The notes below the pieces were generated by a model. That model was not told the DNA's origin and searched no databases. It saw only the letters and a list, made by a program, of their open reading frames with translations. From the sequence record KJ019143.1: a stretch of 64,000 nucleotides of DNA, one strand, 5' to 3'. Both the position numbers and the translations under genes were made by a program. Position 1 is the first letter of the stretch. Every line of letters begins with the position of its first letter. Below are positions 4,169 to 47,131 of the stretch, in pieces.

Positions 4169-4242
4169 GGGTTAATAGCTCAGCTGGACAGAGCAACGCT
4201 CTTCTAAAGCGTCGGTCGTTGGTTCGAATCCAACTTAACCCG
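4169..4242 (+). tRNA. tRNA-Arg (anticodon TCT)
   Basis: Acceptor GGGTTAA/TTAACCC, anticodon arm ACGCT-CTTCTAA-AGCGT, T-arm GTTGG-TTCGAAT-CCAAC; no encoded CCA. Confidence 0.95.
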
Positions 4243-4455: not shown

Positions 4456-4527
4456 TCCACAATAGCTCAGCGGTAGAGTCGGCGACTGTTAATCGCCTTG
4501 TCCCTGGTTCGAATCCAGGTTGTGGAG
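4456..4527 (+). tRNA. tRNA-Asn (anticodon GTT)
   Basis: Acceptor TCCACAA/TTGTGGA, anticodon arm GGCGA-CTGTTAA-TCGCC, T-arm CCTGG-TTCGAAT-CCAGG. Confidence 0.95.
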
Positions 4528-7613: not shown

Positions 7614-7648
7614 GTGTGTTATAATACCATTGTAGAGATTTCTATTTT

Positions 7649-8548
7649 ATGAAGGAACGCAGAAAGTATCCAACCGTATTGAGGTATCCAGGCGGTAAGT
7701 CTAGGATTATCTACTATTTGTTTAGGGAAAATATGATCCCTAAGAATGTCAAGGAATACCGTGAGGGTTTCCTAGGTGGGGGTTCTTGTGCTCTTGCGTT
7801 CTCTGTGATGTACCCAAACACCCCAGTTTGGGTCAATGATCTTTACTACAATCTGTATATCTTCTGGACACAACTCCAGAAGAATCCAGATCCACTCATC
7901 AATCGTCTCCTAGAACTAAAGGACGAAGCCTGTGATGCATCGGGTACAGAAGAACTAGAGAAAAAGCATAGAAAACTCTACACAGATATGCGTGATCTCA
8001 TTAATACTTCTAGTGATCACCTTGATATTGCAACCTCCTTCTACATTCTAAACCGATCTAGTTTCGGTGGATTTACTGAACAGAACAAGAATGCCTTCAT
8101 CCGAGACTCATACAAGAATACTATTTTCTCTCAGAGTAAAATCCGTAAGTTGGCTAATATCTCTGAGATTATCCAACCCTGGAGAATTACCAATACACAC
8201 TACAAGGAACTAATGAGAACTCCTGGTGATGATGTATTTGTGTTCCTAGACCCTCCATATCTAATCAAGGATATGTTGTATGGTAAGGACAAGGAGATGC
8301 ACACTGGGTTCTCTCATGAAGAGTTTGTGAGTGAGTGTAAAGGTTCTACACATGACTGGATGATTACCTACAATGAACATGAATGGTTGAGATCCCAGTT
8401 CGCTGACTATCATATGGAGTCTTTCGAGTTCCGTTATAGTCTCGCCCACAGGGAAGAGAATGGCAACAAGAAAGAAGAACTCCTCATAATGAACTATGAG
8501 ATTCCTCGTGATATCCCAAACCCACTAGAGGTAGTTTTGTATGGATGA
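7649..8548 (+). CDS. DNA adenine methyltransferase (Dam/D12 class)
   Basis: LRYPGGKS, EGFLGGGS (motif I), VNDL, FLDPPY (motif IV); extended -10 TGTGTTATAAT upstream. Confidence 0.92.
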   Translation: MKERRKYPTVLRYPGGKSRIIYYLFRENMIPKNVKEYREGFLGGGSCALAFSVMYPNTPVWVNDLYYNLYIFWTQLQKNPDPLINRLLELKDEACDASGTEELEKKHRKLYTDMRDLINTSSDHLDIATSFYILNRSSFGGFTEQNKNAFIRDSYKNTIFSQSKIRKLANISEIIQPWRITNTHYKELMRTPGDDVFVFLDPPYLIKDMLYGKDKEMHTGFSHEEFVSECKGSTHDWMITYNEHEWLRSQFADYHMESFEFRYSLAHREENGNKKEELLIMNYEIPRDIPNPLEVVLYG

Positions 8549-8996
8549 TCTAGAGCTAGAGTATCATCTTTATCTGGATGGAAACCCTATTCAGACACTG
8601 AAGGATGACGCTAGTACAATGACTTTAGCCAAGAAGAGAGTTATCGGTCCTTACATTCGTAGAGCTGAATCTTTTATTAAAATATCAGAACCATTTAGAG
8701 AACTACTTCGTCTTGATGATGGTAAGGATAAACTTCTAGATGCAATAGGTGTTGTCTGGGCACACTACTTTGAACATAAGATTAACAAGAAGTATATGGT
8801 TATCCCTAAGGATGCATCTCTTGATTTTATGGAATACTTTGGTACTATGGCACAGAAGGATAAGTTCCCGGATGATAAATATATTAAGAAAGCTCAGCGT
8901 ATCATTCTCTCTCACGAAAAGAGTATTGATGCTTTCATTAAGGCTTTTCATAGTATCCGTTTAGCAAACGACAAATATCTCTCCCTGAAGAAATGA
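8541..8996 (+). CDS. hypothetical protein
   Basis: 151-aa ORF overlapping both neighbours. Confidence 0.7.
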   Translation: MDDLELEYHLYLDGNPIQTLKDDASTMTLAKKRVIGPYIRRAESFIKISEPFRELLRLDDGKDKLLDAIGVVWAHYFEHKINKKYMVIPKDASLDFMEYFGTMAQKDKFPDDKYIKKAQRIILSHEKSIDAFIKAFHSIRLANDKYLSLKK

Positions 8997-26955: not shown

Positions 26956-28176
26956 GTGATGAAAATAGATTTCAGTAACTTTTTCCAATACTATGATGGT
27001 AATCTAAAGAACCATGTAGAATCAATTGCTCTACTAGAGCGTGAGATTGAAAAGGTTGCTCCCCATCTCCTCCAGGACGAAGCGGAGTGGGTTAAGTTAT
27101 ATCGTAATACTGCTCAGGTTGATAAACCTGATAAGGTTATTGCCTTACCTGTACCTTACTTCCCCCAGACAGATAACTACACACAGCCAGAGAGGACTTG
27201 TAACTCTTCCTCCTGTGCTATGTGTCTAGAATACTTTAGACCTGGGACTCTAGTTGGTTCTAAAGGTGATGACGCGTACATCAGAAAGGTATTTGCTGTA
27301 GGAGATACCACAGACCACTCAGTTCAAACTAAAGTTCTAGCAGACTATGGTGTAGATTCTGAGTTCAACTATTCACTCAGTTTTGATAACCTAGATCACG
27401 AACTTGAGAACAAGAGACCTGTTGTGATTGGTATCCTCCACAGAGGAACCCTAGCACACCCCACAGGGGGTCATATGGTGGTTGTGATAGGTAAGACGGC
27501 AGAAGGTGATTACATCTGTCACGACCCCTACGGAGACCTTAACGACGGATATACAACCAATGTATACAACGGTCAGTCTGTTGTGTATAAGAGAAATGTT
27601 CTAGAGGCTAGATGGACTCCTGACGGTCCTACCAGTGGTTGGGGGCGTACTTTCCAGGCGAAAGTAACCGCAAAAAAGTCTGAGGAGGGTAAGTTGCCCT
27701 CCGCTGGTGTTGAACTTATCAAAGAGTTTGAAGGACTTCATGTTCTAAAATCTGATGGAATGATCCATGCTTATCCTGACCCTCTATCTGGTGGTGAACC
27801 CTGGACTATTGGTTGGGGTTCTACTAGGGATCTTGATGGATCAGCATTCCATCCTGGGGATAAAATCACCAGAGAGAAAGCAGACATCCTCCTAGAGGAA
27901 CAACTTAGAAGAGATTATCTTTCTAAGTTAGAGCAAACCATTCCCTATTGGGATGAGATGAATGACAACCAGCATGGTGCTCTACTCAGTTTTGGGTATA
28001 ACCTAGGAGCCAGTTTCTATGGAAGTCCTGATTTTAACACAATAACCCGTGTTTTGCGAGACAAAGAGTGGAATAAAGTCCCCGACGCGTTATACTTGTA
28101 TCGTAACCCCGGAACTCCTGTAGAGGAGGGTCTTTCTAGACGACGGATTGCAGAAGGAGAACTTTGGGAGAGCTGA
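26956..28176 (+). CDS. modular lysin: C39-like peptidase plus GH24 lysozyme
   Basis: QTDN...RTCNSSSCAM...GGHMVVVIG...CHDPYG; ELIKEFEG...YPDP...WTIGWG...GLSRRRIAE. Confidence 0.88.
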   Translation: MMKIDFSNFFQYYDGNLKNHVESIALLEREIEKVAPHLLQDEAEWVKLYRNTAQVDKPDKVIALPVPYFPQTDNYTQPERTCNSSSCAMCLEYFRPGTLVGSKGDDAYIRKVFAVGDTTDHSVQTKVLADYGVDSEFNYSLSFDNLDHELENKRPVVIGILHRGTLAHPTGGHMVVVIGKTAEGDYICHDPYGDLNDGYTTNVYNGQSVVYKRNVLEARWTPDGPTSGWGRTFQAKVTAKKSEEGKLPSAGVELIKEFEGLHVLKSDGMIHAYPDPLSGGEPWTIGWGSTRDLDGSAFHPGDKITREKADILLEEQLRRDYLSKLEQTIPYWDEMNDNQHGALLSFGYNLGASFYGSPDFNTITRVLRDKEWNKVPDALYLYRNPGTPVEEGLSRRRIAEGELWES

Positions 28177-28924: not shown

Positions 28925-29569
28925 TTGGATTCCAATAAGAGATCGATTATTAGAAAACTAGCAGCTATTGCTGCGATTGGCTTCGTGGGTATTCCCGCTG
29001 GAGCTGGTCTAATCCCTACTCTAGAACAGTTTCAAGAAGAAAATGGATATGGTACTGAGGAAGTAGTAGAGGATACAACTGAAGAGGTAGTAGAAGAAGT
29101 AGCAATGACAAGGCGTTGGGTTCTCCCCAATGGAACACATAATGAGAAGATAGTACTCAGTGCCCTACAGGATAGGGGTATTACTGATAAAGTTGCTCTA
29201 GCGGTTGTTTTAGGTAATATCAAACAGGAGTCACGATTCCATTCCAATATCTGTGAGGGTGGTGCAAGAGTTAACTATCATGGTTGTAGATATGGTGGTT
29301 ATGGTCTTATCCAATGGACTACTTCAGATAGATATAGAGGACTTGGACACTACGCTTCTAGGATTGGTGGTGATCCTTCCAGTGTAGAAACTCAGGTTGG
29401 ATATATCTTCAGAGAGAGGCAGTGGTTAGACATTGAATCATCCCTCAAAAGAAATGGTCATAGTGTTGGTTACTACATGAATAGGGCATATTACTGGTTG
29501 GGATGGGGTCACCATGGAGCCAGAACCCACTACTCACATGACTATGCTGCTCGTCTCATCTTTAAATAA
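28925..29569 (+). CDS. phage tail-type lysozyme-like protein with N-terminal hydrophobic segment
   Basis: AVVLGNIKQES, GYGLIQWT; TTG start uncertain. Confidence 0.75.
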   Translation: MDSNKRSIIRKLAAIAAIGFVGIPAGAGLIPTLEQFQEENGYGTEEVVEDTTEEVVEEVAMTRRWVLPNGTHNEKIVLSALQDRGITDKVALAVVLGNIKQESRFHSNICEGGARVNYHGCRYGGYGLIQWTTSDRYRGLGHYASRIGGDPSSVETQVGYIFRERQWLDIESSLKRNGHSVGYYMNRAYYWLGWGHHGARTHYSHDYAARLIFK

Positions 29570-32380: not shown

Positions 32381-33379
32381 ATGAAAGCTTTAATCTCTGG
32401 TATAACTGGGCAGGATGGATCCTATCTTGCTGAACTTCTACTGAAGAAGGGGTATGAAGTCCATGGTATTATTCGTAGAACCTCCTCGTTTAATACAGGA
32501 AGAATCGATCATATCTTCGATCAGTTACACCTCCACTACGGGGATTTGACTGACTCCCTGAACATAGTCTCTATCATTAAGGAAGTAGAACCTGATGAGA
32601 TCTACAACCTAGGGGCACAGAGTCATGTGAAAGTATCTTTCGAGGAACCAGAATATACAGCACAGACTGATGCTCTGGGGACCCTAAGAGTATTGGAGGC
32701 AGTTCGTCTCCTAGGTATGACAGATAGGGTCCGTATCTACCAGGCATCCACCAGTGAGTTGTATGGGTTGGTTCAGGAGACACCCCAGAAAGAAACAACT
32801 CCTTTCTACCCACGATCTCCATATGGCGTAGCTAAACTCTATGGATATTGGATTGTAAAGAACTACAGAGAGAGTTATGGGATGCACGCTAGTAGTGGTA
32901 TTCTATTCAACCATGAGTCACCACGACGGGGTGAGACTTTCGTAACCCGTAAGATTACTAGGGGACTATCCCGTATTAGTACAGGACTACAGGATTGTCT
33001 ATACCTAGGTAATCTAAACTCAAGACGAGATTGGGGTCATGCTGAAGACTATGTGGAGGCTATGTGGTTGATGTTACAACAGGAAACTCCTGATGACTAT
33101 GTGATTGCCACAGGTAAAGAGTATTCAGTGAAGGACTTTGTAGAGGCATCTGCTGAATACTTTGGTATGAAGATTGAGTGGCAGGGTGAAGGATTGGATG
33201 AAGTGGGTATAGATAGATTTACAAAGAAGGTTGTCGTTCGTGTGAGTGACAAATACTTCAGACCAGCAGAGGTTGAAACTCTCTGGGGTGATCCCACTAA
33301 GGCTAAAGAGGTATTGGGTTGGAAACCTAATCATACCTTTGCTTCCCTAGTAGAAGATATGTGTATTTACGGTCAGTGA
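32381..33379 (+). CDS. gmd: GDP-mannose 4,6-dehydratase
   Basis: [51 protein letters not shown]. Confidence 0.97.
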
Positions 33380-33381
33380 TT

Positions 33382-34308
33382 ATGAAAAAGGGTTCAACGG
33401 TAGCAGTATTTGGTTCGGGTGGATTGGCTGGAAGTGCCATCACCAGGGCACTCAGGTGTTCCTTTATGGCACATAAGATTCTTACCCCTAGGAGTAAGGA
33501 ACTAGACCTAAGAGAACAGGCAGATGTTCGTAGTTGGTTTAAGGAGAACAAAGTTGATTATGTATTCTTAGCCGCCGCCCTAGTTGGTGGTATTATGGCT
33601 AACAAGACTAGAAAGGCAGAGTTCTTACACGACAACCTAATGATGCAGTGTAATGTAATTGACTCTGCATACTATAGTGGAGTAAAGAAACTCCTATTCT
33701 TAGGTACCTCTTGTATCTATCCAGCAGGAAGACACCATCCACTAGTGGAACATGAACTACTCACAGGACTATTAGAACCAACCAATGACGCATACGCAAT
33801 CGCAAAGATCGCAGGGATCAAACAATGTGACTTCTACCGAGAACAATATGGATTTGATGCTATCTCTATCATGCCTCCTAATCTATATGGTCCTGGAGAT
33901 AATTTCAATGAGGGATCAGGACATGTCCTCGCCTCACTAATGAATAGGTTTCACCTAGCGAAGGAAGCAGGTGCATCTAGAGTTGAATGTTGGGGTGATG
34001 GATCACCTATGAGAGAGTTTCTATATGTGGATGACTTAGCAGATGCTTCCTTATACTTTATGAATAGTTATAGTGAGTCTGGGCACATTAATACTGGGAC
34101 TGGTAGGGATGTAACTATCAAACAACTAGCGGAGACTATTGCTGATGTAGTTGGATACAAAGGTGAGATAGGTTGGGATACAACTAAACCCAACGGAAAC
34201 CCAAGGAAACTACTTGACAGCAGTAGGGCAAACCTGTTAGGATGGGAACCCAAGGTTAAATTTGAAGACGGAATCAAACTCACATACAACTGGTATCTAG
34301 CACAATGA
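33382..34308 (+). CDS. fcl: GDP-L-fucose synthase / ColC-like epimerase-reductase
   Basis: GSGGLAG, AALVGGI, LGTSCIYP, YAIAK, WGDGSPMREFLYVDD. Confidence 0.93.
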   Translation: MKKGSTVAVFGSGGLAGSAITRALRCSFMAHKILTPRSKELDLREQADVRSWFKENKVDYVFLAAALVGGIMANKTRKAEFLHDNLMMQCNVIDSAYYSGVKKLLFLGTSCIYPAGRHHPLVEHELLTGLLEPTNDAYAIAKIAGIKQCDFYREQYGFDAISIMPPNLYGPGDNFNEGSGHVLASLMNRFHLAKEAGASRVECWGDGSPMREFLYVDDLADASLYFMNSYSESGHINTGTGRDVTIKQLAETIADVVGYKGEIGWDTTKPNGNPRKLLDSSRANLLGWEPKVKFEDGIKLTYNWYLAQ

Positions 34309-35498
34309 CAAAGATTACAAATGGATATACGTGGCCTCTTATGAAGGACACTGTGACCAAAAGAGATAGGTTGAGGATGGCAAAGTTTATCCTCACCAGT
34401 GATAGACTAACACAAGGTAAAGAAGTTCGTAAGTTTGAGGAGCAGTGGAGTGAGTGGCTTGGAGTTAAACATTCTCTTTTTGTTAGCAGTGGCAGTACCG
34501 CTAACCTACTTCTTGTGTCTGCTTGGAAGGAATTATACGAGATCCCAGACCAGTCGAAAGTAATTGTACCTGCTTGTACTTGGGTAACTAACGTTGCTCC
34601 TATTATCCAGTGTGGATTGACTCCAGTCTTTTGTGATATCAATCTAGAAGATTACTCTTTTGATTTGGATAAACTACAAGAACTACGTGATGAATATCAC
34701 GATGACATCAGAGGTATCTTTGTTACTCACCTCCTAGGATTTCCTGCTAATGTGGAAAAGTTTCGTGATGTTTTCCCCGACGCTCATATTCTAGAAGATG
34801 TATGTGAGAGTCACGGAGCAGTCCTCCCTAGTGGTGATAAGGCGGGAACCTTTGATGTTGGTGGCACATTTAGTTTCTACTTTGGGCACCACATGACTAC
34901 CATTGAAGGTGGTATGGTGAGTACTAATGATCCAGAACTCTATGATCTAATGAGAATGAAGCGTTCTCATGGGTTAGCGAGAGAATCACTATACTTTGAA
35001 ACATACAAAGAGAAGTATCCTGATGTAAATCCACAGTTTCTCTTCGTTACTGAGGGATATAACTTCCGTAATACTGATCTAGCTGCTGTATTAGGACAGT
35101 CTCAACTGAAGAGACTAGACAGTATGATTGGGATTCGTAACAGGAACTATGAGTTATACCAACAATTACTAAAGAAACACGAACATGACCTTACACATGA
35201 GTATGGTGGTTCTTTCTATATCCCCTCCACACAGGGGGATGTAAGTAGTTTCTGTTTTCCATTTGTAGTTGATAATATGCACTGCTATCTTAAGTTAAAA
35301 GAACTTCTAGAAGAATACTATGTTGAGTATCGACCTATTGTGAGTGGTAACCTCCTACGACAACCATTCTTGAGAGAATATTCTGCTGAGTGTCCCAAGG
35401 CAGATATAGCCCATGAAAAGGGACTATATATTGGGAATAATCACTTTGTAGATGAGTCTAACTTTCACATGCTAGATGAGATTTTGAGCCAACTTTGA
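34305..35498 (+). CDS. PLP-dependent GDP-4-keto-6-deoxymannose 3-dehydratase (ColD-like), DegT/DnrJ fold
   Basis: VSSGSTANL, LEDVCESHG, SFYFGHHMTTIEGG (His where aminotransferases have Lys); no E1-type Cys cluster. Confidence 0.8.
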   Translation: MTKITNGYTWPLMKDTVTKRDRLRMAKFILTSDRLTQGKEVRKFEEQWSEWLGVKHSLFVSSGSTANLLLVSAWKELYEIPDQSKVIVPACTWVTNVAPIIQCGLTPVFCDINLEDYSFDLDKLQELRDEYHDDIRGIFVTHLLGFPANVEKFRDVFPDAHILEDVCESHGAVLPSGDKAGTFDVGGTFSFYFGHHMTTIEGGMVSTNDPELYDLMRMKRSHGLARESLYFETYKEKYPDVNPQFLFVTEGYNFRNTDLAAVLGQSQLKRLDSMIGIRNRNYELYQQLLKKHEHDLTHEYGGSFYIPSTQGDVSSFCFPFVVDNMHCYLKLKELLEEYYVEYRPIVSGNLLRQPFLREYSAECPKADIAHEKGLYIGNNHFVDESNFHMLDEILSQL

Positions 35499-35499
35499 T

Positions 35500-36294
35500 A
35501 TGACATTTTCATTTAATCATATGGGCAACTTGGGGCACCTGGGAAACCAGATGTTTCAGTATGCCGCACTCATTGGTATGGGGGCTAAGCATGGGAGGAG
35601 TATTTGTATCCCCCATAAACAAAGTTTTGGGCAATCATACTACCAGGATCTTCGTAGTAATATCTACGATGCTTTCAACCTCTCACCCAATGGTGTAGGT
35701 ATCAGTAGGTTCCCCACAGTTCAGGAAGGTAGTTTCCACTTTGATGAAAACTTATTTGAGAACCCACCAGAGGAGAACTGTAACCTCTATGGATTCTTCC
35801 AGAGTGAAAAGTGGTTCTCACATATCAAAGAAGGTATTAAGAAAGAGTTCACTCTAAAGGATGAATACCGGGAAGTGGCACAACTGATGAGAGAACAACT
35901 CTCTGGTCAGGTTGTTGCTATTCATGTTCGTAGAACTGACTACCTATCCAATCCAAACCACGGAGCATTGGGTTTAGACTACTATGAGAAGGCGCTAGAG
36001 TTAGTTCCTAATAACCTCACAGTAGTTGTATTCACTGATGATCCAGAGTGGGCTAAAGAACAACCACTCTTTCCAGATGATAGGTTCTTTGTATCAGAGA
36101 CAGACTGTCCCTATACAGACCTTGCTCTTATGAGTATGTGTGATTATCATATTATTGCCAACAGTTCATACTCTTGGTGGGGTGCATACTTATCTGATAG
36201 TAAGAAAGTAATTGCTCCTAAACAGTGGTTTGGGGAACCACTTAAAACAAATAACCTGAAAGATCTTTATTGTGATGGGTGGGTGAAACTATGA
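35500..36294 (+). CDS. GT11 alpha-1,2-fucosyl/colitosyltransferase
   Basis: GHLGNQMFQYA, YGFFQSEKWF, IHVRRTDY, IANSSYSWWGAYL. Confidence 0.93.
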   Translation: MTFSFNHMGNLGHLGNQMFQYAALIGMGAKHGRSICIPHKQSFGQSYYQDLRSNIYDAFNLSPNGVGISRFPTVQEGSFHFDENLFENPPEENCNLYGFFQSEKWFSHIKEGIKKEFTLKDEYREVAQLMREQLSGQVVAIHVRRTDYLSNPNHGALGLDYYEKALELVPNNLTVVVFTDDPEWAKEQPLFPDDRFFVSETDCPYTDLALMSMCDYHIIANSSYSWWGAYLSDSKKVIAPKQWFGEPLKTNNLKDLYCDGWVKL

Positions 36295-36914
36295 GTAACT
36301 TTGCAAGTGCTAAACAGTTTATCAAGAATGGTATTGATACACAACAGGAGTCTATCTCTGGTGGTGGCAGCACTATGGCTTCCACAGTTGCCTTCAGATA
36401 CTTCCTACCAAAGTATATCAAACAGTATGGTATTGAGAGTATCTTAGACATTGGGTGTGGTGACTGGCATTGGATGTCTACTATCAGAGAAGAGTTTCCT
36501 GATGTAGACTATGAGGGATGGGATGCCTCTGAGGATATGATTAATCCCATGACTGAGAAGTATGGAACAGAGAATACCAGGTTTGAGGTAAAGGATATCA
36601 TTGATAACAAGTATCCCAAAGTGGATTTGGTTATCGCTCGTGATGTTCTATTCCACCTCAAAGAAGATTACCTAAAGAAGGTTCTCAAGAATATCAGTAA
36701 GGCAGGTGTGAAGTATCTACTAGCAACTACCTTCCCAGGTTTACCTAAGAACGAAGAACTCACTCCTAAGAAATATGACGGTTGGGGATTCAGACCAATC
36801 AATCTGGATATCGAGCCTTATAATATGAAAGATTATTGTATCAATGATTTCAAGGAAACCACAGCCCCCAACAGGGGGTATCATCGTCATGTGTATTTGT
36901 ATGAGGTAAAATGA
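36291..36914 (+). CDS. class I SAM-dependent methyltransferase (possible sugar O-methyltransferase)
   Basis: SGGGS...ILDIGCGDWHWM...RDVLFHL...RPINL. Confidence 0.85.
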   Translation: MSNFASAKQFIKNGIDTQQESISGGGSTMASTVAFRYFLPKYIKQYGIESILDIGCGDWHWMSTIREEFPDVDYEGWDASEDMINPMTEKYGTENTRFEVKDIIDNKYPKVDLVIARDVLFHLKEDYLKKVLKNISKAGVKYLLATTFPGLPKNEELTPKKYDGWGFRPINLDIEPYNMKDYCINDFKETTAPNRGYHRHVYLYEVK

Positions 36915-37063
36915 AGATCGAAATTGAACTCTCTAAAGATGTAGAATACAAAGGAGAGAAACTAGGTGAGTATATCTGGAACCTAGAAGAGGGAATTAAT
37001 CATGTTACTGGTTTTGGTGATTCACTTGAGGAATGTTTTAAGGAAATTGTGAGGTTTAGATGA
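36911..37063 (+). CDS. small hypothetical protein (50 aa)
   Basis: ATGA overlaps at both ends, GAGG RBS. Confidence 0.6.
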   Translation: MKIEIELSKDVEYKGEKLGEYIWNLEEGINHVTGFGDSLEECFKEIVRFR

Positions 37064-37791
37064 AGAAAGTAGCTATTATCTTTATTGGAACAGGTAGATA
37101 CCTAGAGTTTCTACCAAAGTATTATGAACAGGCAGAAGCAAACCTCTTCCCTGACAGACCCAAACACTACTATGTGTTTACTGATGGTGACTTAGGTAAT
37201 GAACTACCTGACAATGTAACTGTATACGAACAGGAACATCTCCAATGGCCATACATCACCCTCTATCGTTTCGGTATTATCCAGAAACACCTAGAGGAGA
37301 TTGAGAAGGAGTGTGGTTTCCTACTCTTTATGGATGCTGATACACAGGTAGTATCCCCTGTATCGTTCGATGAAGTATTCAGGAAGGGAAAACCCTATAC
37401 AGGTGTTCATCACCCCTGCCACGCCCTGAATATGCCACCACACAATGAGTTTCCTGGTAGTCTAGAAACTAATACAGCATCCAAGGCAGCATGTAAACCT
37501 GGTGATGACTTCTCTGTATATTGGCAAGGTTGTGTATGGGGTGGAAACATAAAGGGTGCTCGTAAGATTATTGATACTCTCCACCACAGAACTAAACAAG
37601 ATGAGGAGAATGGAATCATTGCCAAGTGGCATGATGAAAGTCATATCAATAGATACTTCCTTGACAACAAAGATAAGGTGAATACCCTATCACCTAGTTT
37701 CGCATACCCAGAGTCCTTCACTGAGTATATGGAAGACTACGAACCTAAGATTGTACACCTAGCAAAAGAGAATTCTAAGTATCAGGTATGA
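37060..37791 (+). CDS. GT6 family glycosyltransferase (ABO/alpha-1,3-Gal(NAc) transferase-like)
   Basis: FIGTGRY, HYYVFTD, WPYITLYRF, DAD, WQGCVWGG, WHDESHINRY. Confidence 0.92.
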   Translation: MKKVAIIFIGTGRYLEFLPKYYEQAEANLFPDRPKHYYVFTDGDLGNELPDNVTVYEQEHLQWPYITLYRFGIIQKHLEEIEKECGFLLFMDADTQVVSPVSFDEVFRKGKPYTGVHHPCHALNMPPHNEFPGSLETNTASKAACKPGDDFSVYWQGCVWGGNIKGARKIIDTLHHRTKQDEENGIIAKWHDESHINRYFLDNKDKVNTLSPSFAYPESFTEYMEDYEPKIVHLAKENSKYQV

Positions 37792-38411
37792 GTTACTTCA
37801 CAGATTATGACAACGAATTCACAGTATTCGAGGCACCAAAGAACGGGGGAACTACTCTCCGTCTTTGGATATACTACGCAGGAACAGGGGAGTTGGTGAA
37901 GTCAGCGGAGTCTGAATACTACGCTGGCACTGGAGAAACATACAAACAACTCCAAGAGTGGGGTTATGTGAATGGGGAATACGAGAACCCCAAGACCCAG
38001 ATGGTATGTATCAAGAGAGACCCTGTAGATAGGTTTGTAAGTGCCTTCTATGATAAGGTAATCAAAGAGGGGAGAATCAAAGTAACCATCGATGAGTTTC
38101 TCTCAAACTATGAAGAGATACTTGATAAGTCTACCCTCAAGATGAATGATGGTAAGACTAACTTCATGAAGTTTCACTTTGAGTCACAGACATATCACTT
38201 CGGTAAAGATAAAGATCTATATCATAAGGTCTTTGATATCTCAGAGGTTGGTACTGGTCTGAAGAAGTATCTGGAGGGTAAGTGGAATATAGAACTACCT
38301 GATGTCCATGCTAGAAATAGTGGTGGTGGTCGGAAGTTTGATCTCTCCAGGGGACAACTGAATAAGGTGAAGGAAATCTACACACAGGACTATTATAATG
38401 GCTGGTACTGA
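37788..38411 (+). CDS. sulfotransferase family 2 protein
   Basis: 5'-PSB-like PKNGGTT; 3'-PB-like RDPVDRFVSAF. Confidence 0.8.
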   Translation: MSYFTDYDNEFTVFEAPKNGGTTLRLWIYYAGTGELVKSAESEYYAGTGETYKQLQEWGYVNGEYENPKTQMVCIKRDPVDRFVSAFYDKVIKEGRIKVTIDEFLSNYEEILDKSTLKMNDGKTNFMKFHFESQTYHFGKDKDLYHKVFDISEVGTGLKKYLEGKWNIELPDVHARNSGGGRKFDLSRGQLNKVKEIYTQDYYNGWY

Positions 38412-39183
38412 AGGATATATCCTGATAGGTATTGGTGATAGGTATCTACAGATGACAGAGAACCTCACTAAAACTCTAAAGAAACATGGAGATAATAGAG
38501 GATCCCTAACTATCACAAGATCGGATAATAGGGAACTCTATAGTGAGTGTAACACTGAGTTTGAGAGGAATGGAACTCTACCTAAGATTACCTTAGATAG
38601 ATACTTACCTTTTGATCACAATATATTCCTAGATGCTGATATGTTATGTGTAGGTGATACACAACATGTATGGGATCTATTCAGGAGTAGTGATCAGTTT
38701 GTTCAACAGGTAGGATGTTTGGGAAGAGATCCTAACTTCCACGCTCACCAGTATGAGAGTGAGTTGGGTTTTGAGATTCCTAGAGTCCATGGTGGTTGTA
38801 TCTACATCAATAGAGAGAAACTAGACCCAGGGTTCTTTCCCTATATGAGAGAGTGTTTCCTAAACTATAAACAAATATTTCATAATAGTGGTCTAACCTA
38901 TAAGAATAGTAGACCAGATCAACCACTATACGCTCTAGCAAATGGTATGTGGGGATTCAAACCTGTGGATCTATACACTAACCCTATCATGACTATTGTG
39001 AATGATAGCACCCCACCCCCACTAGATAGTGTGTTCTTCAATAAGAAGAGGGGTCCTAAGTTAGATACTCCTGTTCCCTTTGTTCATGTATTCCGTGGAG
39101 AAGAGGGTATGTCTAGGGGTTATACTAGAGGTGACCAGAAGATGTTGTTGTCCCATTATGATTACTACCTGAACTATGAATAA
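38398..39183 (+). CDS. GT-A fold glycosyltransferase (GT8-like)
   Basis: KITLDRY...IFLDADML...GGCIYI...DQP. Confidence 0.7.
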   Translation: MAGTEGYILIGIGDRYLQMTENLTKTLKKHGDNRGSLTITRSDNRELYSECNTEFERNGTLPKITLDRYLPFDHNIFLDADMLCVGDTQHVWDLFRSSDQFVQQVGCLGRDPNFHAHQYESELGFEIPRVHGGCIYINREKLDPGFFPYMRECFLNYKQIFHNSGLTYKNSRPDQPLYALANGMWGFKPVDLYTNPIMTIVNDSTPPPLDSVFFNKKRGPKLDTPVPFVHVFRGEEGMSRGYTRGDQKMLLSHYDYYLNYE

Positions 39184-39964
39184 AACTATATGGATGTGTT
39201 GGTTCCAGGGTTGGGATAAGGCACCAGAGATTACAGAGAAGTGTTTAGAGTCCTGGAAACACTACAATAGTGATTGGGATATTGTTCTACTAGATGAATC
39301 CAACTACAAGGATTACATCTCCATTGATAAAGAACTACCAGGACTGAAGACAAACTATATCTCACTGGGTGATATCCTCCGTCTCTTTCTACTAAAAGAG
39401 CATGGTGGAGTATGGGCAGATGCAACTATCTTCTGTAACAAACCAGTGGATTGGGTTTTGGATTATGAGGATTCTTTCATCTTCACCAGGAAGGATAAGA
39501 TGATTGCCTCTTGGTTTGTTGCTGCTCAGAAAGATTCCCATGTTGTAGATGTATGGTATAATAAGATGTTAGAGTTCTGGAAGTATCGTATGGAAAATAC
39601 AGATACTTTCGAGCAACAATATGGTTGGATACACGCTTTGTTCCGTCAGTCCTACGCTCAGGATAAGGGGTTCAGGGATATTGTAGATAGTATGGATAAG
39701 ATTGATTGCATGAGTGATGGTCAATCTAGAGGTAAGGGTCCGCACTTCTTTGCACCCTACAGTAAATACTTCTACAACCCTATCAGTGACACGATAAAGA
39801 ATCGTATAGACTCTAAAGTTGATCCACTATATAAGTTGTCTTACAAGGCAAACACAGACTGGAGAAGTCCAGAGAACAGGGGTATCCACCCAGCAGACCA
39901 AAAGATTATGTTGGAATATCCAACTAATAGTGAACTACATTATCTACTCAACACATTAAAATGA
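39176..39964 (+). CDS. capsular polysaccharide synthesis protein (GT32-like DxD)
   Basis: IWMCWFQG, DILRLFLLKEHGGVWADAT. Confidence 0.85.
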   Translation: MNKTIWMCWFQGWDKAPEITEKCLESWKHYNSDWDIVLLDESNYKDYISIDKELPGLKTNYISLGDILRLFLLKEHGGVWADATIFCNKPVDWVLDYEDSFIFTRKDKMIASWFVAAQKDSHVVDVWYNKMLEFWKYRMENTDTFEQQYGWIHALFRQSYAQDKGFRDIVDSMDKIDCMSDGQSRGKGPHFFAPYSKYFYNPISDTIKNRIDSKVDPLYKLSYKANTDWRSPENRGIHPADQKIMLEYPTNSELHYLLNTLK

Positions 39965-40866
39965 CAAATAAATCATTGGTTACCGGTGGCGCGGGTTTCA
40001 TCGGGTCACATATTGTGGACCGACTTATTACACTAGGACATCAAGTCGTAGTGATTGACAATGAATCCTCTGATGGTCATGATGAATACCATTGGAACAG
40101 AAGCGGACAAGTACAAAACCATAAGGCAGACATTCGTGACTACGATGCAATCAAACACTTGTTTGGTGGAGTCAATAATGTTTTTCACCTTGCCGCTAAA
40201 GCATCAGTACAGGCGTCAGTAGATAACCCCCTACCAACTATTGCCACACAGGTAATGGGAACCGCCAATGTATTGGAGGCAGCACGACAATCTGGTGTGA
40301 GTAAGTTTGTATATTCCTCTACTAGTGCTTGTTATGGTAACAACAACCCCATTCCTAATGTAGAAACGATGAGAGAAGATCCTCTCAACGCCTATGCTAT
40401 TGGTAAGTTATCTGGGGAACAACTAGTTCGTGCCTATCACTACCTCTATGGTATGAAGACGGTGGCATTCCGTTATACCAATGTATATGGGGAGAGGGCA
40501 AGACATGTAGGACACTATGCTCCTGCTGTTAGTAAGTTCCTAAAGATGAGAGCACAGGGAGAACCTCTAACTATCTTTGGTGATGGTGCCCAACGCCGAG
40601 ACTTTATTCATGTATCTGATGTAGTCAACGCTAACTGCTGTATTACCTATGAGGAACTAGAGCAGTGGGGTGAGACCTACAACATTGGTTATGGTAAGAA
40701 CTGGAGTATCCAAGAGATTGCAGACTCTATCAGTCAGGAACAGATTCACCTATCTGCTCGTACTGGTGAGATGCGTGAGACGCTTGCTGATATTGGGAAG
40801 GCAAAGGCAGAGTTGATGTGGAAACCAAAGACTGACATCATGGATTGGATTAGGGTACAACTCTGA
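39961..40866 (+). CDS. NAD-dependent nucleotide-sugar epimerase/dehydratase (SDR)
   Basis: VTGGAGFIGSH, FHLAA, YAIGK, RYTNVYG, RRDFIHVSD. Confidence 0.93.
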   Translation: MTNKSLVTGGAGFIGSHIVDRLITLGHQVVVIDNESSDGHDEYHWNRSGQVQNHKADIRDYDAIKHLFGGVNNVFHLAAKASVQASVDNPLPTIATQVMGTANVLEAARQSGVSKFVYSSTSACYGNNNPIPNVETMREDPLNAYAIGKLSGEQLVRAYHYLYGMKTVAFRYTNVYGERARHVGHYAPAVSKFLKMRAQGEPLTIFGDGAQRRDFIHVSDVVNANCCITYEELEQWGETYNIGYGKNWSIQEIADSISQEQIHLSARTGEMRETLADIGKAKAELMWKPKTDIMDWIRVQL

Positions 40867-41483
40867 TGCCAGTATTCCAGAAGGACAACAAGAAAGTTCT
40901 ATTCATCCATGTTCCCAAGACTGCGGGGAGTTCTGTGAATAAACTCTTTGTGAATAATGGATATGAAATGTCCTACTATTCTGAGAGTTCTAAAGATCTA
41001 TACAATGGATTATGTGGACCACAACATCTGGACTCACTTCTATTGGAAGATGAGTTCCAAGATTTCTCTCAGTTTGATTATATCTTCTCTATCTTCAGAG
41101 ACCCAGTAGACAGACATCTATCTGAGTTCACCTGGGCACCCTGGGGACTAATGGGTAGAAACATCTACACACCAGAAAGATTTGATGAGTGGTGTCCTAA
41201 GATATTCAGGGCGTATCAGGACTCACCATATAGGATGGATAACCACATTAGACCTCAACATGAGTTCTATGTGGATGGATGTGATGTGTATGACTATGAG
41301 AATATCGATACACTCACAGAGAAACTATGTGATAAAATAGGTCTAGATAATAAAGAGATGCCATATGAAAGGTCTTCACGATATGATAGTGAGGATTATG
41401 TCATCTATGAAGATACTTACGATTGTATCACTGAATTTTACAAAGGAGACTATCAATGGCAAAAGGATTCAGTCCTGTTGTGA
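40866..41483 (+). CDS. sulfotransferase family 2 protein
   Basis: FIHVPKTAGSS; RDPVDRHLSEF; HIRPQ. Confidence 0.85.
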   Translation: MPVFQKDNKKVLFIHVPKTAGSSVNKLFVNNGYEMSYYSESSKDLYNGLCGPQHLDSLLLEDEFQDFSQFDYIFSIFRDPVDRHLSEFTWAPWGLMGRNIYTPERFDEWCPKIFRAYQDSPYRMDNHIRPQHEFYVDGCDVYDYENIDTLTEKLCDKIGLDNKEMPYERSSRYDSEDYVIYEDTYDCITEFYKGDYQWQKDSVLL

Positions 41484-42334
41484 CTAAGGATAAGAACAAG
41501 TCCCAGTTCAAACTACAGGGTGTTCCTAGGATTTACTACATCAGTTTAGATGATCATGCTCATCGTCAAGACTATATGGAGTCCCAGTTTGAAGACTGGG
41601 GCATCACTAACTTTGAAAGAATCTCTGCTCATGATGGTAGAGGTGATAATGATCTGAGTGATATTCTCAAAGGATCTTATCCAAAGATGATGAGTTCTGG
41701 TGAGGTTGGTTGTGTGACCTCTCACCTAAAGGCACTCAAACACTGGTTAGATACTACAGAGGGTGAAGAGTTTCTCCTTATGATGGAGGATGATTGTGAT
41801 ATCTCCACTGCTTCCCACTGGGGGTTCTCCTGGAGAGAGTTTGTTGGGAATATTCCATCCCATGTAGATTGTGTTCAGTTAGCAGTTATCAACCCGGCAG
41901 AACTACATATCAAACTCCATATCAGGTTTGTGAATGATTTCTCCACTGCCTCATACCTAATCCGTAGATCACACGCAGAGAAGTTAGTTAGACTCTATTG
42001 TAGGGGTGATAAGTATAAACTTGATAGTGATATCAAACCCAGAGCAGTTGCTGATGATCTTATCTACAACTCTGGTGTGACTCTTGCTATGCCTCTATTT
42101 GCCTTCAAGATTGCACTAGGTTCCAGTATCCATGATGTCCATATCAATACCTTCCACAAGAGTAGTCATGATGGTATCTGGGAGTTTTGGAAGAAAACAG
42201 CACCAACTATTGAGAACTGGAAACCATTCTTCAACTATGATGCCTATCTGGGAACCCTACCACCCAATGTTGTGGTTCAACAATGGCAGCAAAAACAGGA
42301 ATCCAAAGCAAAAGATTCAGGGGCTTCGCAATAG
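41456..42334 (+). CDS. GT25 family glycosyltransferase
   Basis: YYISLD..R, ERISAHDG, GEVGCVTSH, MEDD. Confidence 0.9.
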   Translation: MAKGFSPVVTKDKNKSQFKLQGVPRIYYISLDDHAHRQDYMESQFEDWGITNFERISAHDGRGDNDLSDILKGSYPKMMSSGEVGCVTSHLKALKHWLDTTEGEEFLLMMEDDCDISTASHWGFSWREFVGNIPSHVDCVQLAVINPAELHIKLHIRFVNDFSTASYLIRRSHAEKLVRLYCRGDKYKLDSDIKPRAVADDLIYNSGVTLAMPLFAFKIALGSSIHDVHINTFHKSSHDGIWEFWKKTAPTIENWKPFFNYDAYLGTLPPNVVVQQWQQKQESKAKDSGASQ

Positions 42335-43152: not shown

Positions 43153-43158
43153 TATTAG

Positions 43159-43186
43159 AAGGAGGGTTTGATACCCTCCTTTTTTT
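43159..43186 (+). terminator. intrinsic terminator
   Basis: GGAGGGT-ttgat-ACCCTCC-T7. Confidence 0.85.
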
Positions 43187-43233: not shown

Positions 43234-45549
43234 ATGGCATTTAAGATTAATGGCGTAGTACGCATTGATAATAGTGGCAACGGTTTTCTGGGAATTGTAA
43301 CCGCTACCGACGCTAATATCACAGGAGTTCTCACTGCCACTGAGGTGGATGCGAAAGTATCATCTAAGGCAATAACTGAACAAACAGATGGAACCGTAGA
43401 TGATGTAACTGGTGCAGATGAACTATTACTATTAGATGCCGAGACTGGTGGATTACTAAGAGTATCAATAGATGAGTTCGTGCAGGGTTCAGGCATTGGA
43501 ACTCTAGTAACGGACTTTGATAACTTAACTGTTACTGGTATCACAACCGTTGCCACCCTCAAAGGTATTGGATCTAATAACATCAGTGTAGGGAGCACAC
43601 TTTCCTTTGCTGATGGTACAGAGATCATCATGGGTGACTCTGGTGACTTCAGTATTCATCATGATGGTGACCATACTTACCTAGATGAGACGGGGCAGGG
43701 TAATCTAAAACTCCGTACAAATAACTTTAGAGTAACAAATATAGCAGAAACAAAACCAGCTATTACAGCACAGGTTACTTCTGGTGTTGAGTTGTATTTT
43801 GATGGTAATAAGAAGATAGAAACTACAAATACTGGTGTTCTTGTGAGTGGTATGCTCACTGCTGATAGATTAAGATCAGGTGATATTGCTGCTAGAAATG
43901 TAATCACACTGGGTATTACCACTATCCAAGATCATTTGGAAGTGAATGATAGTACTGGTTCTGGTACGGAATATAATCTTAATGTTAAGACTAATGGTAG
44001 TTCTACCTTTGGTGTCTTAGGTAATGGAAATATTCTACTTGGAAACAGTTCCGGTGCTCCATTCATGGCGACGAATGATCACCACGCAACTTCCAAGAAA
44101 TATGTAGATGACGCCATCGCTGATGATCCTAGCGGTGCTGCGGCTTGGGGTACTGTTGCCTCAAACAACAGTGGTGGTGCTAGTAGTATTACTTTACTGG
44201 GTGGGATGAATGTAGCAAGTGTCACAGCTGGCACATCAAATGCAAAAGGAAATTTCGTGGTTACATTTGCCACTCCAATGCCTGATGCAAACTATTCAGT
44301 AACCGCTAGTTATAATAACGCTAATGTTAACACATATGGGGATATTAGTGTAGGTTCTAAAACAGCAAGTAGTTTTGAGGTTCAAACTTTTGAATCATCA
44401 AATCTGCCTGACTGGCAGGGGTTTGGATTTGTCGTCTTCGCAACCAATGCCCTCCCACCAACAGGCGGCACCGGCACAGATAGCTGGGCAGCTGTAGATC
44501 AAACTATTGTTAATGGTGCTTGTAATGTACCGGCAAGTTTTAACGTTGCTTCAGTAACTAGAACTGGACTGGGCCTATATGACGTGGTGTTTACAACGCC
44601 GATGCCTACTGATAAATACAGCGTTGTGGGTAGCATTACCCGAGACACATTTTCTAATTTCTGTACTTCTAATAGGTCGGCTACTGGCTTTACAGTAAAG
44701 AACACCTATCAGAATCGCGATAACGGTGCTACTCAGTATGCAGACAACCCCTTCTCCTTCACCGTCAACGCCACCAACGCAACGCTACCTGAAACTATTA
44801 CAACGGATCAGTTTACCTCTGCGTTTAATGCTCCTACCTTCAAAAACATTCTCATCAATGGAAATCTGACAATTAATCAACGTAATGTTAATATTACATC
44901 TGTTTCTGCCGGTGAATATGGTGAAGATCGTTGGAAAAAGACATTAGGTGGGATGACGCAGATTGTTGAAGATGGTAATTATCTACCAAGTTCTTCTTAC
45001 ACTTTATCTGGAACAGGTATTACTACAACTACAGCAAACTCACCTGCTTCTGGTGACTGGGACATCTCAACAACCTTTGGTGATATTCCTATTACTGCTC
45101 GTTCTATCCAACTTGAATATGGCAACGTAGCCTCAGCGTTTGACTTGAGACCGGTTGGGGTGGAGCTGAGTTTGTGTCATCGTTATTTTTATAGAATAAT
45201 AAGGTCCGTCAACAGCACTCCTTTTACTATTAAATCTAACAGTAACTCAAACGACATTCCCGCTGTAGGCTCGATCGAGTGTTCTTACAGTGTAGTTTTT
45301 CCAGCCACAATGAGAACCCAACCTACTGGCTCAAATTACAGTAACAACGGAGCAAATAACTATTTGGCAATTCCAGGATATAGGGCTATTACTAACTCTT
45401 TTCTGGCAAGCGATGTAAGTTTTTCATACGCATCCTCTGAAGACGCAGTAATTTTAGTGGATACGACCTTAGGGAGCATCGGAGTAGTTCAAGGAGCTGC
45501 GTTCCCGCTAGAGGCGGCTTTTAGTTATGACATCGACGCCGAACTTTAA
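43234..45549 (+). CDS. tail fibre-like structural protein
   Basis: 771 aa G/T/S/N-rich; HATSKKYVD; duplicated NVASVT...F.TPMP...YSV module; NILINGNLTINQR; late promoter. Confidence 0.85.
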   Translation: MAFKINGVVRIDNSGNGFLGIVTATDANITGVLTATEVDAKVSSKAITEQTDGTVDDVTGADELLLLDAETGGLLRVSIDEFVQGSGIGTLVTDFDNLTVTGITTVATLKGIGSNNISVGSTLSFADGTEIIMGDSGDFSIHHDGDHTYLDETGQGNLKLRTNNFRVTNIAETKPAITAQVTSGVELYFDGNKKIETTNTGVLVSGMLTADRLRSGDIAARNVITLGITTIQDHLEVNDSTGSGTEYNLNVKTNGSSTFGVLGNGNILLGNSSGAPFMATNDHHATSKKYVDDAIADDPSGAAAWGTVASNNSGGASSITLLGGMNVASVTAGTSNAKGNFVVTFATPMPDANYSVTASYNNANVNTYGDISVGSKTASSFEVQTFESSNLPDWQGFGFVVFATNALPPTGGTGTDSWAAVDQTIVNGACNVPASFNVASVTRTGLGLYDVVFTTPMPTDKYSVVGSITRDTFSNFCTSNRSATGFTVKNTYQNRDNGATQYADNPFSFTVNATNATLPETITTDQFTSAFNAPTFKNILINGNLTINQRNVNITSVSAGEYGEDRWKKTLGGMTQIVEDGNYLPSSSYTLSGTGITTTTANSPASGDWDISTTFGDIPITARSIQLEYGNVASAFDLRPVGVELSLCHRYFYRIIRSVNSTPFTIKSNSNSNDIPAVGSIECSYSVVFPATMRTQPTGSNYSNNGANNYLAIPGYRAITNSFLASDVSFSYASSEDAVILVDTTLGSIGVVQGAAFPLEAAFSYDIDAEL

Positions 45550-45893: not shown

Positions 45894-45934
45894 AAACACA
45901 TAAATAAGATATGTAAAGTTCTTATTACAACACT

Positions 45935-46051
45935 TCCATCTAACCGAGACCTACGGGGAAGTAAAATACGTCTCTAATACCTACACCGGAGGGTGGTGTA
46001 GGAATAATACTATCGTCAGCTCCCCCTGGCACTACTTACCCTTTTTACACA
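45935..46051 (+). ncRNA. psbA 5' leader structure, PhotoRC-II-like
   Basis: GAGAC/GTCTC stem, CCTACACC/GGTGTAGG stem with GGAGGGT loop, directly upstream of psbA. Confidence 0.7.
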
Positions 46052-47131
46052 ATGGCTTCAACACTTACACGCCGTCAAGGCGCATCTATCTGGGATCAGT
46101 TTTGTTCCTGGGTCACATCAACCAACAATCGTCTTTACGTCGGTTGGTTCGGTGTTCTAATGATTCCTACATTGTTAGCCGCAACTGTATGTTTCATTAT
46201 CGCTTTCGTGGGTGCTCCCCCAGTGGACATCGACGGAATCCGTGAACCAGTAGCTGGTTCACTCATGTATGGAAACAACATCATCTCTGGTGCAGTTGTT
46301 CCTAGTTCAAACGCAATCGGTTTACACTTCTACCCCATCTGGGAAGCTGCATCACTTGATGAATGGCTTTACAATGGTGGTCCTTTCCAACTAGTTGTCT
46401 TCCACTTCCTTATCGGTATCTACGCCTATATGGGACGTGAATGGGAACTCTCTTATCGTTTAGGTATGAGACCTTGGATCTGTGTAGCATACTCTGCACC
46501 AGTTGCAGCAGCTTCAGCAGTATTCCTAGTCTATCCTTTCGGTCAAGGTTCATTCTCAGACGCGATGCCCTTGGGTATCTCTGGAACATTCAACTACATG
46601 TTGGTCTTCCAAGCAGAACATAACATCTTGATGCACCCCTTCCACATGTTGGGAGTCGCAGGTGTCTTCGGTGGTTCATTGTTCTCAGCGATGCATGGTT
46701 CACTTGTTACCTCTTCACTTGTCCGTGAGACAACTGAAACTGAGTCACAGAACTATGGTTACAAGTTCGGTCAAGAAGAAGAGACCTATAACATCGTGGC
46801 AGCCCATGGCTACTTCGGTCGTTTGATCTTCCAATACGCTTCATTCAACAACTCACGCTCACTCCACTTCTTCTTAGCCGCATGGCCAGTTGTGGGTATC
46901 TGGTTCACCGCACTTGGTGTTTCCACAATGGCATTCAACCTCAATGGTTTCAACTTCAACCAGTCTGTTATCGACGGACAAGGTAGAGTATTGAACACCT
47001 GGGCGGATGTTCTTAACAGAGCTGGTCTTGGGATGGAAGTAATGCATGAGAGAAATGCACACAACTTCCCACTAGATTTGGCAGCAGCTGAGTCCACACC
47101 AGTGGCTCTAATTGCACCATCTGTTGGTTGA
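46052..47131 (+). CDS. psbA: photosystem II D1 protein
   Basis: [18 protein letters not shown] (Glu130 form), [13 protein letters not shown]; uninterrupted. Confidence 0.99.

Follow-up and report, generated by a model that had tools for sequence, protein, structure and literature searches.

Which sugar is made when the fucosylation genes of a cyanophage are joined by one for a further enzyme, with His where sugar aminotransferases have their Schiff-base Lys? This question is raised by positions 32381-36294 of a 64,000-nucleotide stretch of sequence record KJ019143.1 (the window), which comes from Synechococcus phage ACG-2014f, a T4-like cyanomyovirus (Kyanoviridae, Atlauavirus). The block encodes a GDP-mannose 4,6-dehydratase (gmd), an Fcl-type reductase, a pyridoxal 5'-phosphate (PLP)-dependent enzyme of the DegT fold and a glycosyltransferase of family GT11, and a first-pass annotation made from the sequence alone had read it as a pathway for the synthesis and transfer of GDP-L-colitose. 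Colitose, or 3-deoxy-L-fucose, is a 3,6-dideoxyhexose known mostly from the O-antigens of enteric and marine Gram-negative bacteria. Our analysis suggests that the four genes are probably a virus-borne GDP-L-colitose module on a cyanophage fucosylation cassette.

Four tightly packed genes

As had been proposed, the four genes are contiguous; they are tightly packed open reading frames (ORFs) on the + strand and the domain scans agree with their names (Table 1). The distances between them are +2, -4 and +1 nt, followed by -4 nt into the methyltransferase gene downstream. The 4.1-kb block is carried by 45 ACG-2014f records at 95-100% identity. The ratio of nonsynonymous to synonymous substitution rates (dN/dS) against isolate NC_026927 was 0.035 for gmd, 0.116 for the reductase, 0.059 for the PLP enzyme and 0 for GT11 (no nonsynonymous and six synonymous differences), so all four genes are kept under purifying selection. 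Gmd passes the TIGR01472 equivalog cut-off (555 against 415 bits). The 64-kb window has no manA, manB or manC, as the first-pass annotation had stated for the last two, and a tblastn search (E <= 1e-5) of the ACG-2014f and S-CAM7 records in the phage collection gave no ManC homolog; GDP-mannose must therefore be supplied by the host. Near the block, nothing reached the Rfam gathering score for the wcaG RNA, a motif annotated upstream of gmd/fcl in S-SCSM1.

The PLP enzyme, most likely a ColD-type 3-dehydratase

Judged from its sequence, the product of the third gene is most likely a ColD-type, Fe-S-independent GDP-4-keto-6-deoxymannose 3-dehydratase. The initial reading had drawn attention to the motif SFYFGHHMTTIEGG (residues 190-203, with RSHGLARE downstream), in which His replaces the Schiff-base Lys, and this was borne out: His195, the first His of GHHMTT, aligns with the catalytic His188 of E. 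coli ColD; the mutant chains H188K and H188N in the PDB, whose sequences deviate at precisely this position, leave no doubt about the correspondence. In an alignment of 46 sequences, including the phage enzyme, 28 other members of its clade, three E1/RfbH-type proteins and four Lys paralogs, His occupies the catalytic column in the phage enzyme as well as in each of the 28 clade members. The clade has the signature FSFYFGHHMTT[IV/L]EGGM, where that of ColD is FSSF[FY]SHHIATMEGGC, and at this column the canonical Lys is present in the four DegT paralogs, which come from archaeal loci.

The exchange of His for Lys is the mark of the 3-dehydratases E1, ColD and SpnQ, and a four-Cys [2Fe-2S] motif is present only in E1 and SpnQ (PMC8987622). 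The lack of such a Cys cluster after RSHGLARE, also remarked on at first pass, was verified: in the ~100 columns past the His there is no Cys in the phage enzyme, against four or five in the three E1/RfbH-type proteins (cyanophage S-H68, a Salmonella fragment and a Methanosarcinales paralog), which likewise have the His. The clade members have mostly 0-1 Cys in these columns (maximum 3) and no conserved cluster. E1 (RfbH/DdhC) and SpnQ share the fold and the His with the phage enzyme but have the four [2Fe-2S] Cys and depend on a reductase partner; no candidate for an E3-type reductase was found among the block and island genes scanned.

The best sequence match in the PDB is E. coli O55 ColD (2gms, 178 bits), followed by a putative nucleoside diphosphate-sugar 3-dehydratase (9wvy, 125 bits), E1 (108 bits) and GDP-perosamine synthase (95 bits). 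An AlphaFold2 model built on a 44-sequence alignment (predicted local distance difference test 87, predicted template modelling (TM) score 0.85) retrieved ColD chains as the top 12 Foldseek matches (E 5e-29, TM 0.79-0.81). The runner-up was GDP-perosamine synthase, another enzyme that acts on GDP-4-keto-6-deoxymannose, and E1 came at rank 29. With ColD (WbdK) of E. coli O55/O111, Yersinia and Salmonella (2gms, 3b8x) the phage enzyme has in common the DegT/aspartate-aminotransferase-type fold, the HH dyad and the absence of an Fe-S motif. The clade shows no variation at residues D159, S183, H188, H189, R213, H215, N248, R250 and R331 (ColD numbering) and next to none at E329; the phage enzyme keeps all of them, E329 and R219 included. 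The R219 column holds Arg or Lys across the clade and Cys in all E1-like proteins, and W88 is confined to ColD and the phage clade. We take R219, N248, E329 and R331 to line the GDP-sugar site of ColD.

In a maximum-likelihood tree (IQ-TREE, rooted on the Lys paralogs), the phage clade and genuine ColD are joined at 99/97 and the E1-like proteins are separate at 98/91. Genuine ColD forms a monophyletic group (100/100) with a stem of 1.45; the phage clade, which is much more diverse, is its sister group and lies outside the characterised ColD clade. The alignment and tree with ColD and E1-type enzymes that the first-pass annotation had suggested as a check thus put His at the catalytic position and the enzyme beside ColD. 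Its preference for ColD over E1 stands as regards the type of enzyme, on the tree, the fold and the missing Cys; it is not, however, an orthologue of characterised ColD, the two being sister clades with 32-34% identity.

Gene context and substrate

Gene context gives the strongest indirect evidence for the substrate. Among at least 206 viral contigs with the gene, 80 IMG/VR loci were inspected for neighbours within 6 kb; gmd was found in 68 of them, an Fcl-type gene in 53 and GT11 in 33, and these counts are minimums, as many IMG/VR contigs are incomplete. The commonest viral order, Gmd-Fcl-dehydratase-GT11, occurs in at least 27 viral contigs. An exact-motif scan of GTDB species representatives gave 20 cellular loci from bacteria and archaea; the dehydratase homolog adjoins gmd in 12 of the 20 and an Fcl-like gene in several. 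In four DPANN contigs (L009, L011, L012 and L016), Gmd (~residues 1-344) and the dehydratase (~376-745) form one stop-free ORF; an Fcl-like gene comes next in each, and then a second gmd in L011, L012 and L016. Since they are fused in these archaeal ORFs, Gmd and the dehydratase would act in succession. The fusion together with the gmd adjacency points to GDP-4-keto-6-deoxymannose as the substrate of the dehydratase. Proven colitose loci are built alike: Psychrobacter and Yersinia similis have gmd-colC-colD, and GT11 is also present in Yersinia and in E. coli O55, so that ColD loci and the phage block both unite gmd, an Fcl-homologous reductase and a nearby GT11. The central claim of the first-pass annotation, a ColD-type 3-dehydratase beside gmd, a 4-reductase/epimerase and GT11, from which synthesis and transfer of GDP-colitose would follow, is in this sense supported by alignment, tree, fold, gene context and gene fusion.

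A probable dehydratase insertion in a cyanophage fucose cassette

The trio of gmd, fcl and GT11 is familiar from cyanophages (P-SSM2, S-SCSM1, DSL-LC03 and S-SKS1), which are T4-like cyanomyoviruses with the same kind of hypervariable glycan island. Their genes are homologous to those of the block (Fcl ~55% identity, GT11 223-231 bits) but they have no His-type dehydratase. The cassette recurs in S-CAM7, a phage of another genus, where the dehydratase gene also lies between fcl and GT11 as in ACG-2014f, with Fcl directly upstream and no extra short-chain dehydrogenase/reductase (SDR). The block thus resembles a fucose cassette of the cyanophage type into which a ColD-type dehydratase was inserted, and the insertion in ACG-2014f and S-CAM7 should divert the pathway to a 3-deoxy sugar. 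We would describe it as a ColD-type step grafted in viruses onto an Fcl/GT11 fucose cassette, with a mechanism that is presumably that of ColD.

The exact-motif scan returned 206 viral contigs and 20 cellular loci, the latter mostly from uncultured bacteria and archaea and none of them cyanobacterial. This hints at an enrichment of the dehydratase clade in viruses, with the limits that retrieval was pattern-based and that some contigs of metagenome-assembled genomes (MAGs) may be viral. In IMGVR_UViG_3300004461_001069 (L039/L119), Fcl and GT11 are 99% and 97% identical to those of the window and the dehydratase between them 82%, a difference that points to exchange of the dehydratase gene on its own, by single-gene allelic replacement. 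A very divergent member (33% identity, long branch) occurs in the uncultured 642-kb phage LR756502 (L032), where an Fcl-type gene (6917-7924) is directly followed by the His-type dehydratase (7928-9097).

Some loci have another arrangement. On a phage-like contig with a UvsX/RecA gene (L022:6001-7937), the dehydratase has no Fcl gene next to it; it is followed by a 255-residue protein that combines a CTP_transf_like with a MannoseP_isomer domain. The freshwater cyanophage S-H68 (L034:4842-6137), and also S-B43, RB11-B and RN05-S, encode an E1/RfbH-like 3-dehydratase that has both the His and a cluster of four Cys; a GT11 gene lies some kilobases further downstream. By its sequence this group would represent a second, Fe-S-type dideoxyhexose route in phages.

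Proposed pathway

In the pathway that we propose, Gmd would use host GDP-mannose to form GDP-4-keto-6-deoxy-D-mannose. The DegT-fold enzyme, with pyridoxamine 5'-phosphate (PMP) as cofactor and His195 as acid/base, would then expel the C3 hydroxyl to give GDP-4-keto-3,6-dideoxy-D-mannose, as sequence, fold, phylogeny, gene context and fusions suggest, and PMP would be regenerated from glutamate by analogy with ColD. Fcl enzymes epimerise C3 and C5 and reduce C4. On a 3-deoxy substrate the Fcl-type enzyme would perform C5 epimerisation and C4 reduction; with C3 unsubstituted, a reaction of unchanged stereochemistry leads to 3-deoxy-L-fucose, and the expected product would be GDP-L-colitose. Any Gmd product escaping the dehydratase would become GDP-L-fucose through the same Fcl-type enzyme, and because both enzymes compete for it, some GDP-fucose may form alongside GDP-colitose. 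GT11 would move the L-sugar alpha-1,2 onto a galactoside acceptor, and the GT6, methyltransferase, sulfotransferases and other glycosyltransferases encoded downstream would elaborate the glycan; candidates for the acceptor are an envelope glycan of the host and a protein of the virion. The most plausible purpose is a remodelling of the infected cell surface.

Fucose ancestry of the reductase and transferase

Several points weigh against a colitose pathway, starting with the reductase, which by its sequence is of the Fcl lineage and not a ColC, the name that the first-pass annotation gave it. The comparison used genuine ColD/ColC loci, retrieved by searching with the ColD segment, and the E. 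coli O156 fucose cluster as the Fcl yardstick. The reductase scores 310 bits against E. coli GDP-fucose synthetase (1bsv), 335 bits against the true O-antigen Fcl of E. coli O156 and 192-230 bits against genuine ColC; with 420 bits it stays below the cut-off of 500 of the Fcl equivalog NF047922. ColC forms a tight, long-branched clade in the reductase trees (100/100), and the ACG-2014f and S-CAM7 reductase lies inside the true-Fcl clade (97/97), with Fcl of E. coli, P-SSM2, S-SCSM1 and DSL-LC03. Seventeen columns hold residues that are fixed in both ColC and Fcl but differ between the two, and at 16 of these the phage protein has the Fcl state. When aligned with E. coli Fcl, it keeps all the catalytic residues, Ser/Thr107, Cys109, Tyr136, Lys140 and His179. 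At the position of the catalytic-triad Ser107, within GTSCIYP, the reductases of ACG-2014f and S-CAM7 carry Thr, as do the archaeal homologs L011 and L012; the other Fcl and ColC in the alignment have Ser.

The GT11, too, belongs to the fucosyltransferase lineage of cyanophages that lack ColD and have only fucose genes. It exceeds the PF01531 gathering score of 23.9, and its HVRRTD corresponds to the HxRRxD motif of the family. With the colitosyltransferase WbgN of E. coli O55 it shares the CAZy family, this motif and the position in a colitose gene set, but a special kinship with WbgN, which the first-pass annotation had named as a member of GT11, was not recovered: the score is 84 bits (76 bits to the GT11 of the Yersinia colitose locus), against 231 bits to the GT11 of P-SSM2 and 223 bits to a gene of S-SCSM1 that carries the label alpha-1,2-fucosyltransferase. 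The viral GT11s, both those that have a dehydratase gene beside them and those that do not, group in a single clade (99), apart from the enterobacterial ones. Separate clades of those Fcl and GT11 that adjoin the dehydratase would have argued for co-evolution towards colitose; none were found, and in a thin sampling of ColD-less loci they are interleaved with their ColD-less relatives.

To these points are added the distance of the dehydratase from ColD itself, with 32-34% identity and a clade that is sister to, and not nested in, the characterised enzymes, and the fact that Gmd, Fcl and GT11 by themselves would give ordinary fucosylation. In the searchable literature we found no report of any Fcl that accepts a 3-deoxy intermediate, and none of colitose in picocyanobacteria or cyanophages.

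Part of this ancestry, however, has little bearing on the donor. Both L-colitose and L-fucose are transferred by WbgN and by human FUT2 (PMC11987014), and GDP-fucose is well tolerated by WbgN (PMC12723683). As GT11 enzymes take both GDP-colitose and GDP-fucose, the lineage of the GT11 is not diagnostic of its donor and is no argument against colitose transfer; that it would reject GDP-colitose seems unlikely. As for the reductase, the viral Fcl-type genes that adjoin the dehydratase, roughly 40 in number, without exception belong to the Fcl clade, in several groups interleaved with ColD-less Fcl. Pairing of a generic Fcl with the dehydratase clade is therefore the rule and enterobacterial ColC a derived special case. 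ColC, the GDP-L-colitose synthase, is a homologous SDR, and the phage reductase occupies the equivalent spot directly upstream of the dehydratase; the same C5 epimerisation and C4 reduction are expected from both, although ColC has its own clade and the phage enzyme stands among GDP-fucose synthases.

Alternative readings

Existing records name the PLP enzyme differently. RefSeq has 'aminotransferase', exactly the automated label that had been foreseen at first pass, GenBank 'hypothetical protein', and UniRef and JGI a CDP-sugar 3-dehydrase/E1. A sugar aminotransferase, making for example GDP-perosamine or a related 4-amino sugar, would agree with the DegT/DnrJ/EryC1 fold, with GDP-perosamine synthase as second-best structural match and with the RefSeq label. 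We rejected this annotation and find the reading very unlikely, since the phage enzyme and all examined members of the clade have His where the Schiff-base Lys would be, a substitution accepted as the 3-dehydratase hallmark (PMC8987622), while the transaminase paralogs in the same archaeal loci keep their Lys. It is scarcely credible that the enzyme is an E1/RfbH-type CDP-4-keto-6-deoxyglucose 3-dehydrase, as the UniRef, JGI and S-CAM7 names have it, and this annotation was rejected as well: RfbH (PRK15407) is indeed the best NCBIfam match, but its 185 bits are far under the cut-off of 423, the [2Fe-2S] Cys cluster is lacking, tree and fold go with ColD, and the window has gmd and fcl as neighbours and neither CDP-glucose genes nor a candidate E3 reductase. 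The 3-dehydrase idea is thus not wholly new, being already hinted in the S-CAM7, UniRef and JGI records, where nucleotide (CDP) and subtype (E1) are both wrong; what is new relative to these annotations is the GDP/ColD/colitose reading.

Other readings concern the product. If the block was a fucose cassette with an unrelated passenger, only L-fucose would be made and transferred, as in P-SSM2, S-SCSM1 and DSL-LC03, and the PLP enzyme would serve another nucleotide sugar or be marginal. This would fit with the reductase and GT11, whose closest counterparts are E. coli Fcl and the proteins of cyanophages without ColD, and with the Fcl residues at the discriminating columns. We nevertheless consider it unlikely, given that the dehydratase gene is wedged between fcl and GT11, its start and stop overlapping or adjoining those of its neighbours, that the same gene order is repeated across the viral contigs, that the dehydratase is fused to Gmd in archaea and has a dN/dS of 0.06, and that neither the ACG-2014f nor the S-CAM7 block has another 4,6-dehydratase to feed the PLP enzyme. 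It is also conceivable, if quite improbable, that another reductase finishes the 4-keto-3,6-dideoxy intermediate without C5 epimerisation, giving another GDP-3,6-dideoxyhexose, e.g. the D-arabino (tyvelose-like) one, and that Fcl makes only fucose. A second SDR gene in the same island, loci L010 and L018, which pair the dehydratase with a non-Fcl SDR (merely 79-87 bits), and the lack of an adjacent Fcl in L022 would be in agreement with it; the S-CAM7 block, which keeps Fcl directly upstream of the dehydratase without an extra SDR, and the frequency of a nearby Fcl type in the viral loci (53 of 80) argue against it.

The downstream glycan island

The block is followed by further genes for glycan synthesis and modification (Table 1).

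Table 1. Genes of the block and of the downstream island (window positions), and archaeal fusion ORFs (positions in the respective locus)
Feature	Position	Strand	Evidence and remarks
gmd, GDP-mannose 4,6-dehydratase	32381..33379	+	TIGR01472 555 bits; PF16363 507 bits
Fcl-type NADPH-dependent epimerase/4-reductase	33382..34308	+	NF047922 420 bits; 1bsv 310 bits
ColD-type PLP/PMP-dependent 3-dehydratase (predicted)	34305..35498	+	PF01041 206 bits; 2gms 178 bits; His195
GT11 glycosyltransferase (alpha-1,2-fucosyl/colitosyl-transferase family)	35500..36294	+	PF01531 98 bits; HVRRTD
S-adenosylmethionine (SAM)-dependent methyltransferase	36291..36914	+	PF08242/PF13649 ~41 bits; RefSeq start, longest ORF from 36279; 4-nt overlap with GT11 stop
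GT6 glycosyltransferase	37060..37791	+	PF03414 76 bits; NF041524 174 bits (below cut-off 250); DXD = DAD 92-94
Sulfotransferase-like protein	37788..38411	+	PF03567 29 bits
ORF without family	38398..39183	+	no Pfam or NCBIfam match
Caps_synth/GT32-like glycosyltransferase	39176..39964	+	PF05704 141 bits
GalE-like SDR nucleotide-sugar epimerase/reductase	39961..40866	+	PF01370 211 bits; TIGR01179 176 bits, below cut-off
Second sulfotransferase-like protein	40866..41483	+	PF03567 33 bits
GT25-family glycosyltransferase, last island gene	41456..42334	+	PF01755 44 bits
Gmd::dehydratase fusion ORF, Pacearchaeota/Nanoarchaeota MAG	L009:4876-7224		
Gmd::dehydratase fusion ORF, Pacearchaeota/Nanoarchaeota MAG	L011:4876-7143		
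Gmd::dehydratase fusion ORF, Pacearchaeota/Nanoarchaeota MAG	L012:4897-7227		
Gmd::dehydratase fusion ORF, Pacearchaeota/Nanoarchaeota MAG	L016:474-2696		

The GT6 gene begins ~770 nt downstream of GT11. A GT6 of Parachlamydia, similar to the cyanophage type, transfers N-acetylgalactosamine (GalNAc) only onto 2'-fucosylated acceptors (PMC3516806), and because of this requirement the order GT11 then GT6 makes an H/A-antigen-like motif with colitose or fucose plausible, if speculative. The GT6 would plausibly add alpha-1,3-galactose (Gal) or GalNAc to the 2'-deoxyhexosylated Gal produced by GT11. In the island of S-CAM7 the equivalent position is taken by an adenylylsulfate (APS) kinase (L026:11747-12316), which together with the two sulfotransferase-like genes hints that the phage-made glycan is sulfated.

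A strong terminator-like hairpin with an 11-bp stem and a T run lies at 43157-43183, downstream of the island and of the hli and ferredoxin genes next to it; the ORF past it (43234-45549) is the tail fibre gene in the RefSeq annotation. A promoter scan gave 29 sites where 32.6 were expected by chance. About the transcription unit we make no claim past this hairpin and the tight gene packing.

Possible significance

A broader reading can be offered tentatively, as possible rather than probable: a virus-enriched, ColD-type lineage would have been plugged repeatedly into viral fucosylation cassettes, so that infected hosts, marine cyanobacteria as well as those of hundreds of uncultured phages, display colitose that their genomes apparently cannot make, colitose replacing fucose on glycans that are H/A-antigen-like, methylated or sulfated, with a generic Fcl and a single gene as the switch. 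One added dehydratase gene would then swap fucose for its 3-deoxy analogue, Fcl and GT11 being probably promiscuous enough. We found no description of virus-encoded synthesis of colitose or of any 3,6-dideoxyhexose in the searchable literature; a pathway to a 3,6-dideoxyhexose would, if this reading is true, be a first for viruses, and it would work with a generic Fcl and no dedicated ColC. Such a one-gene switch of surface-sugar identity could, for instance, keep out superinfecting phages or give protection from phages, lectins or grazers that recognise fucose. Abundant ocean phages would in this case give their hosts new sugar chemistry, and the range of auxiliary metabolic genes would extend from central metabolism to the editing of surface glycans. 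In addition, public annotation of these genes is inconsistent and partly wrong, and the clade signature combined with a gmd neighbour could be used to re-annotate hundreds of viral and MAG genes. The clade is also a source of new predicted Fe-S-free 3-dehydratases and of natural Gmd-dehydratase fusions for the enzymatic synthesis of GDP-colitose.

Other features of the window

Two RNA motifs were found apart from the island. A manA RNA motif (RF01745, 90 bits) lies at 4244-4454, between tRNA genes at 4169-4242 and 4456-4527, and a PhotoRC-II RNA motif (RF01717, 69 bits) at 45920-46015, just upstream of ORF 46052-47131, which is psbA in RefSeq. Upstream of the block, a 406-residue protein (26956-28176) unites Peptidase_C39-like cysteine protease and phage lysozyme domains, and a separate protein with a tail-lysozyme domain is encoded nearby, at 28925-29569.

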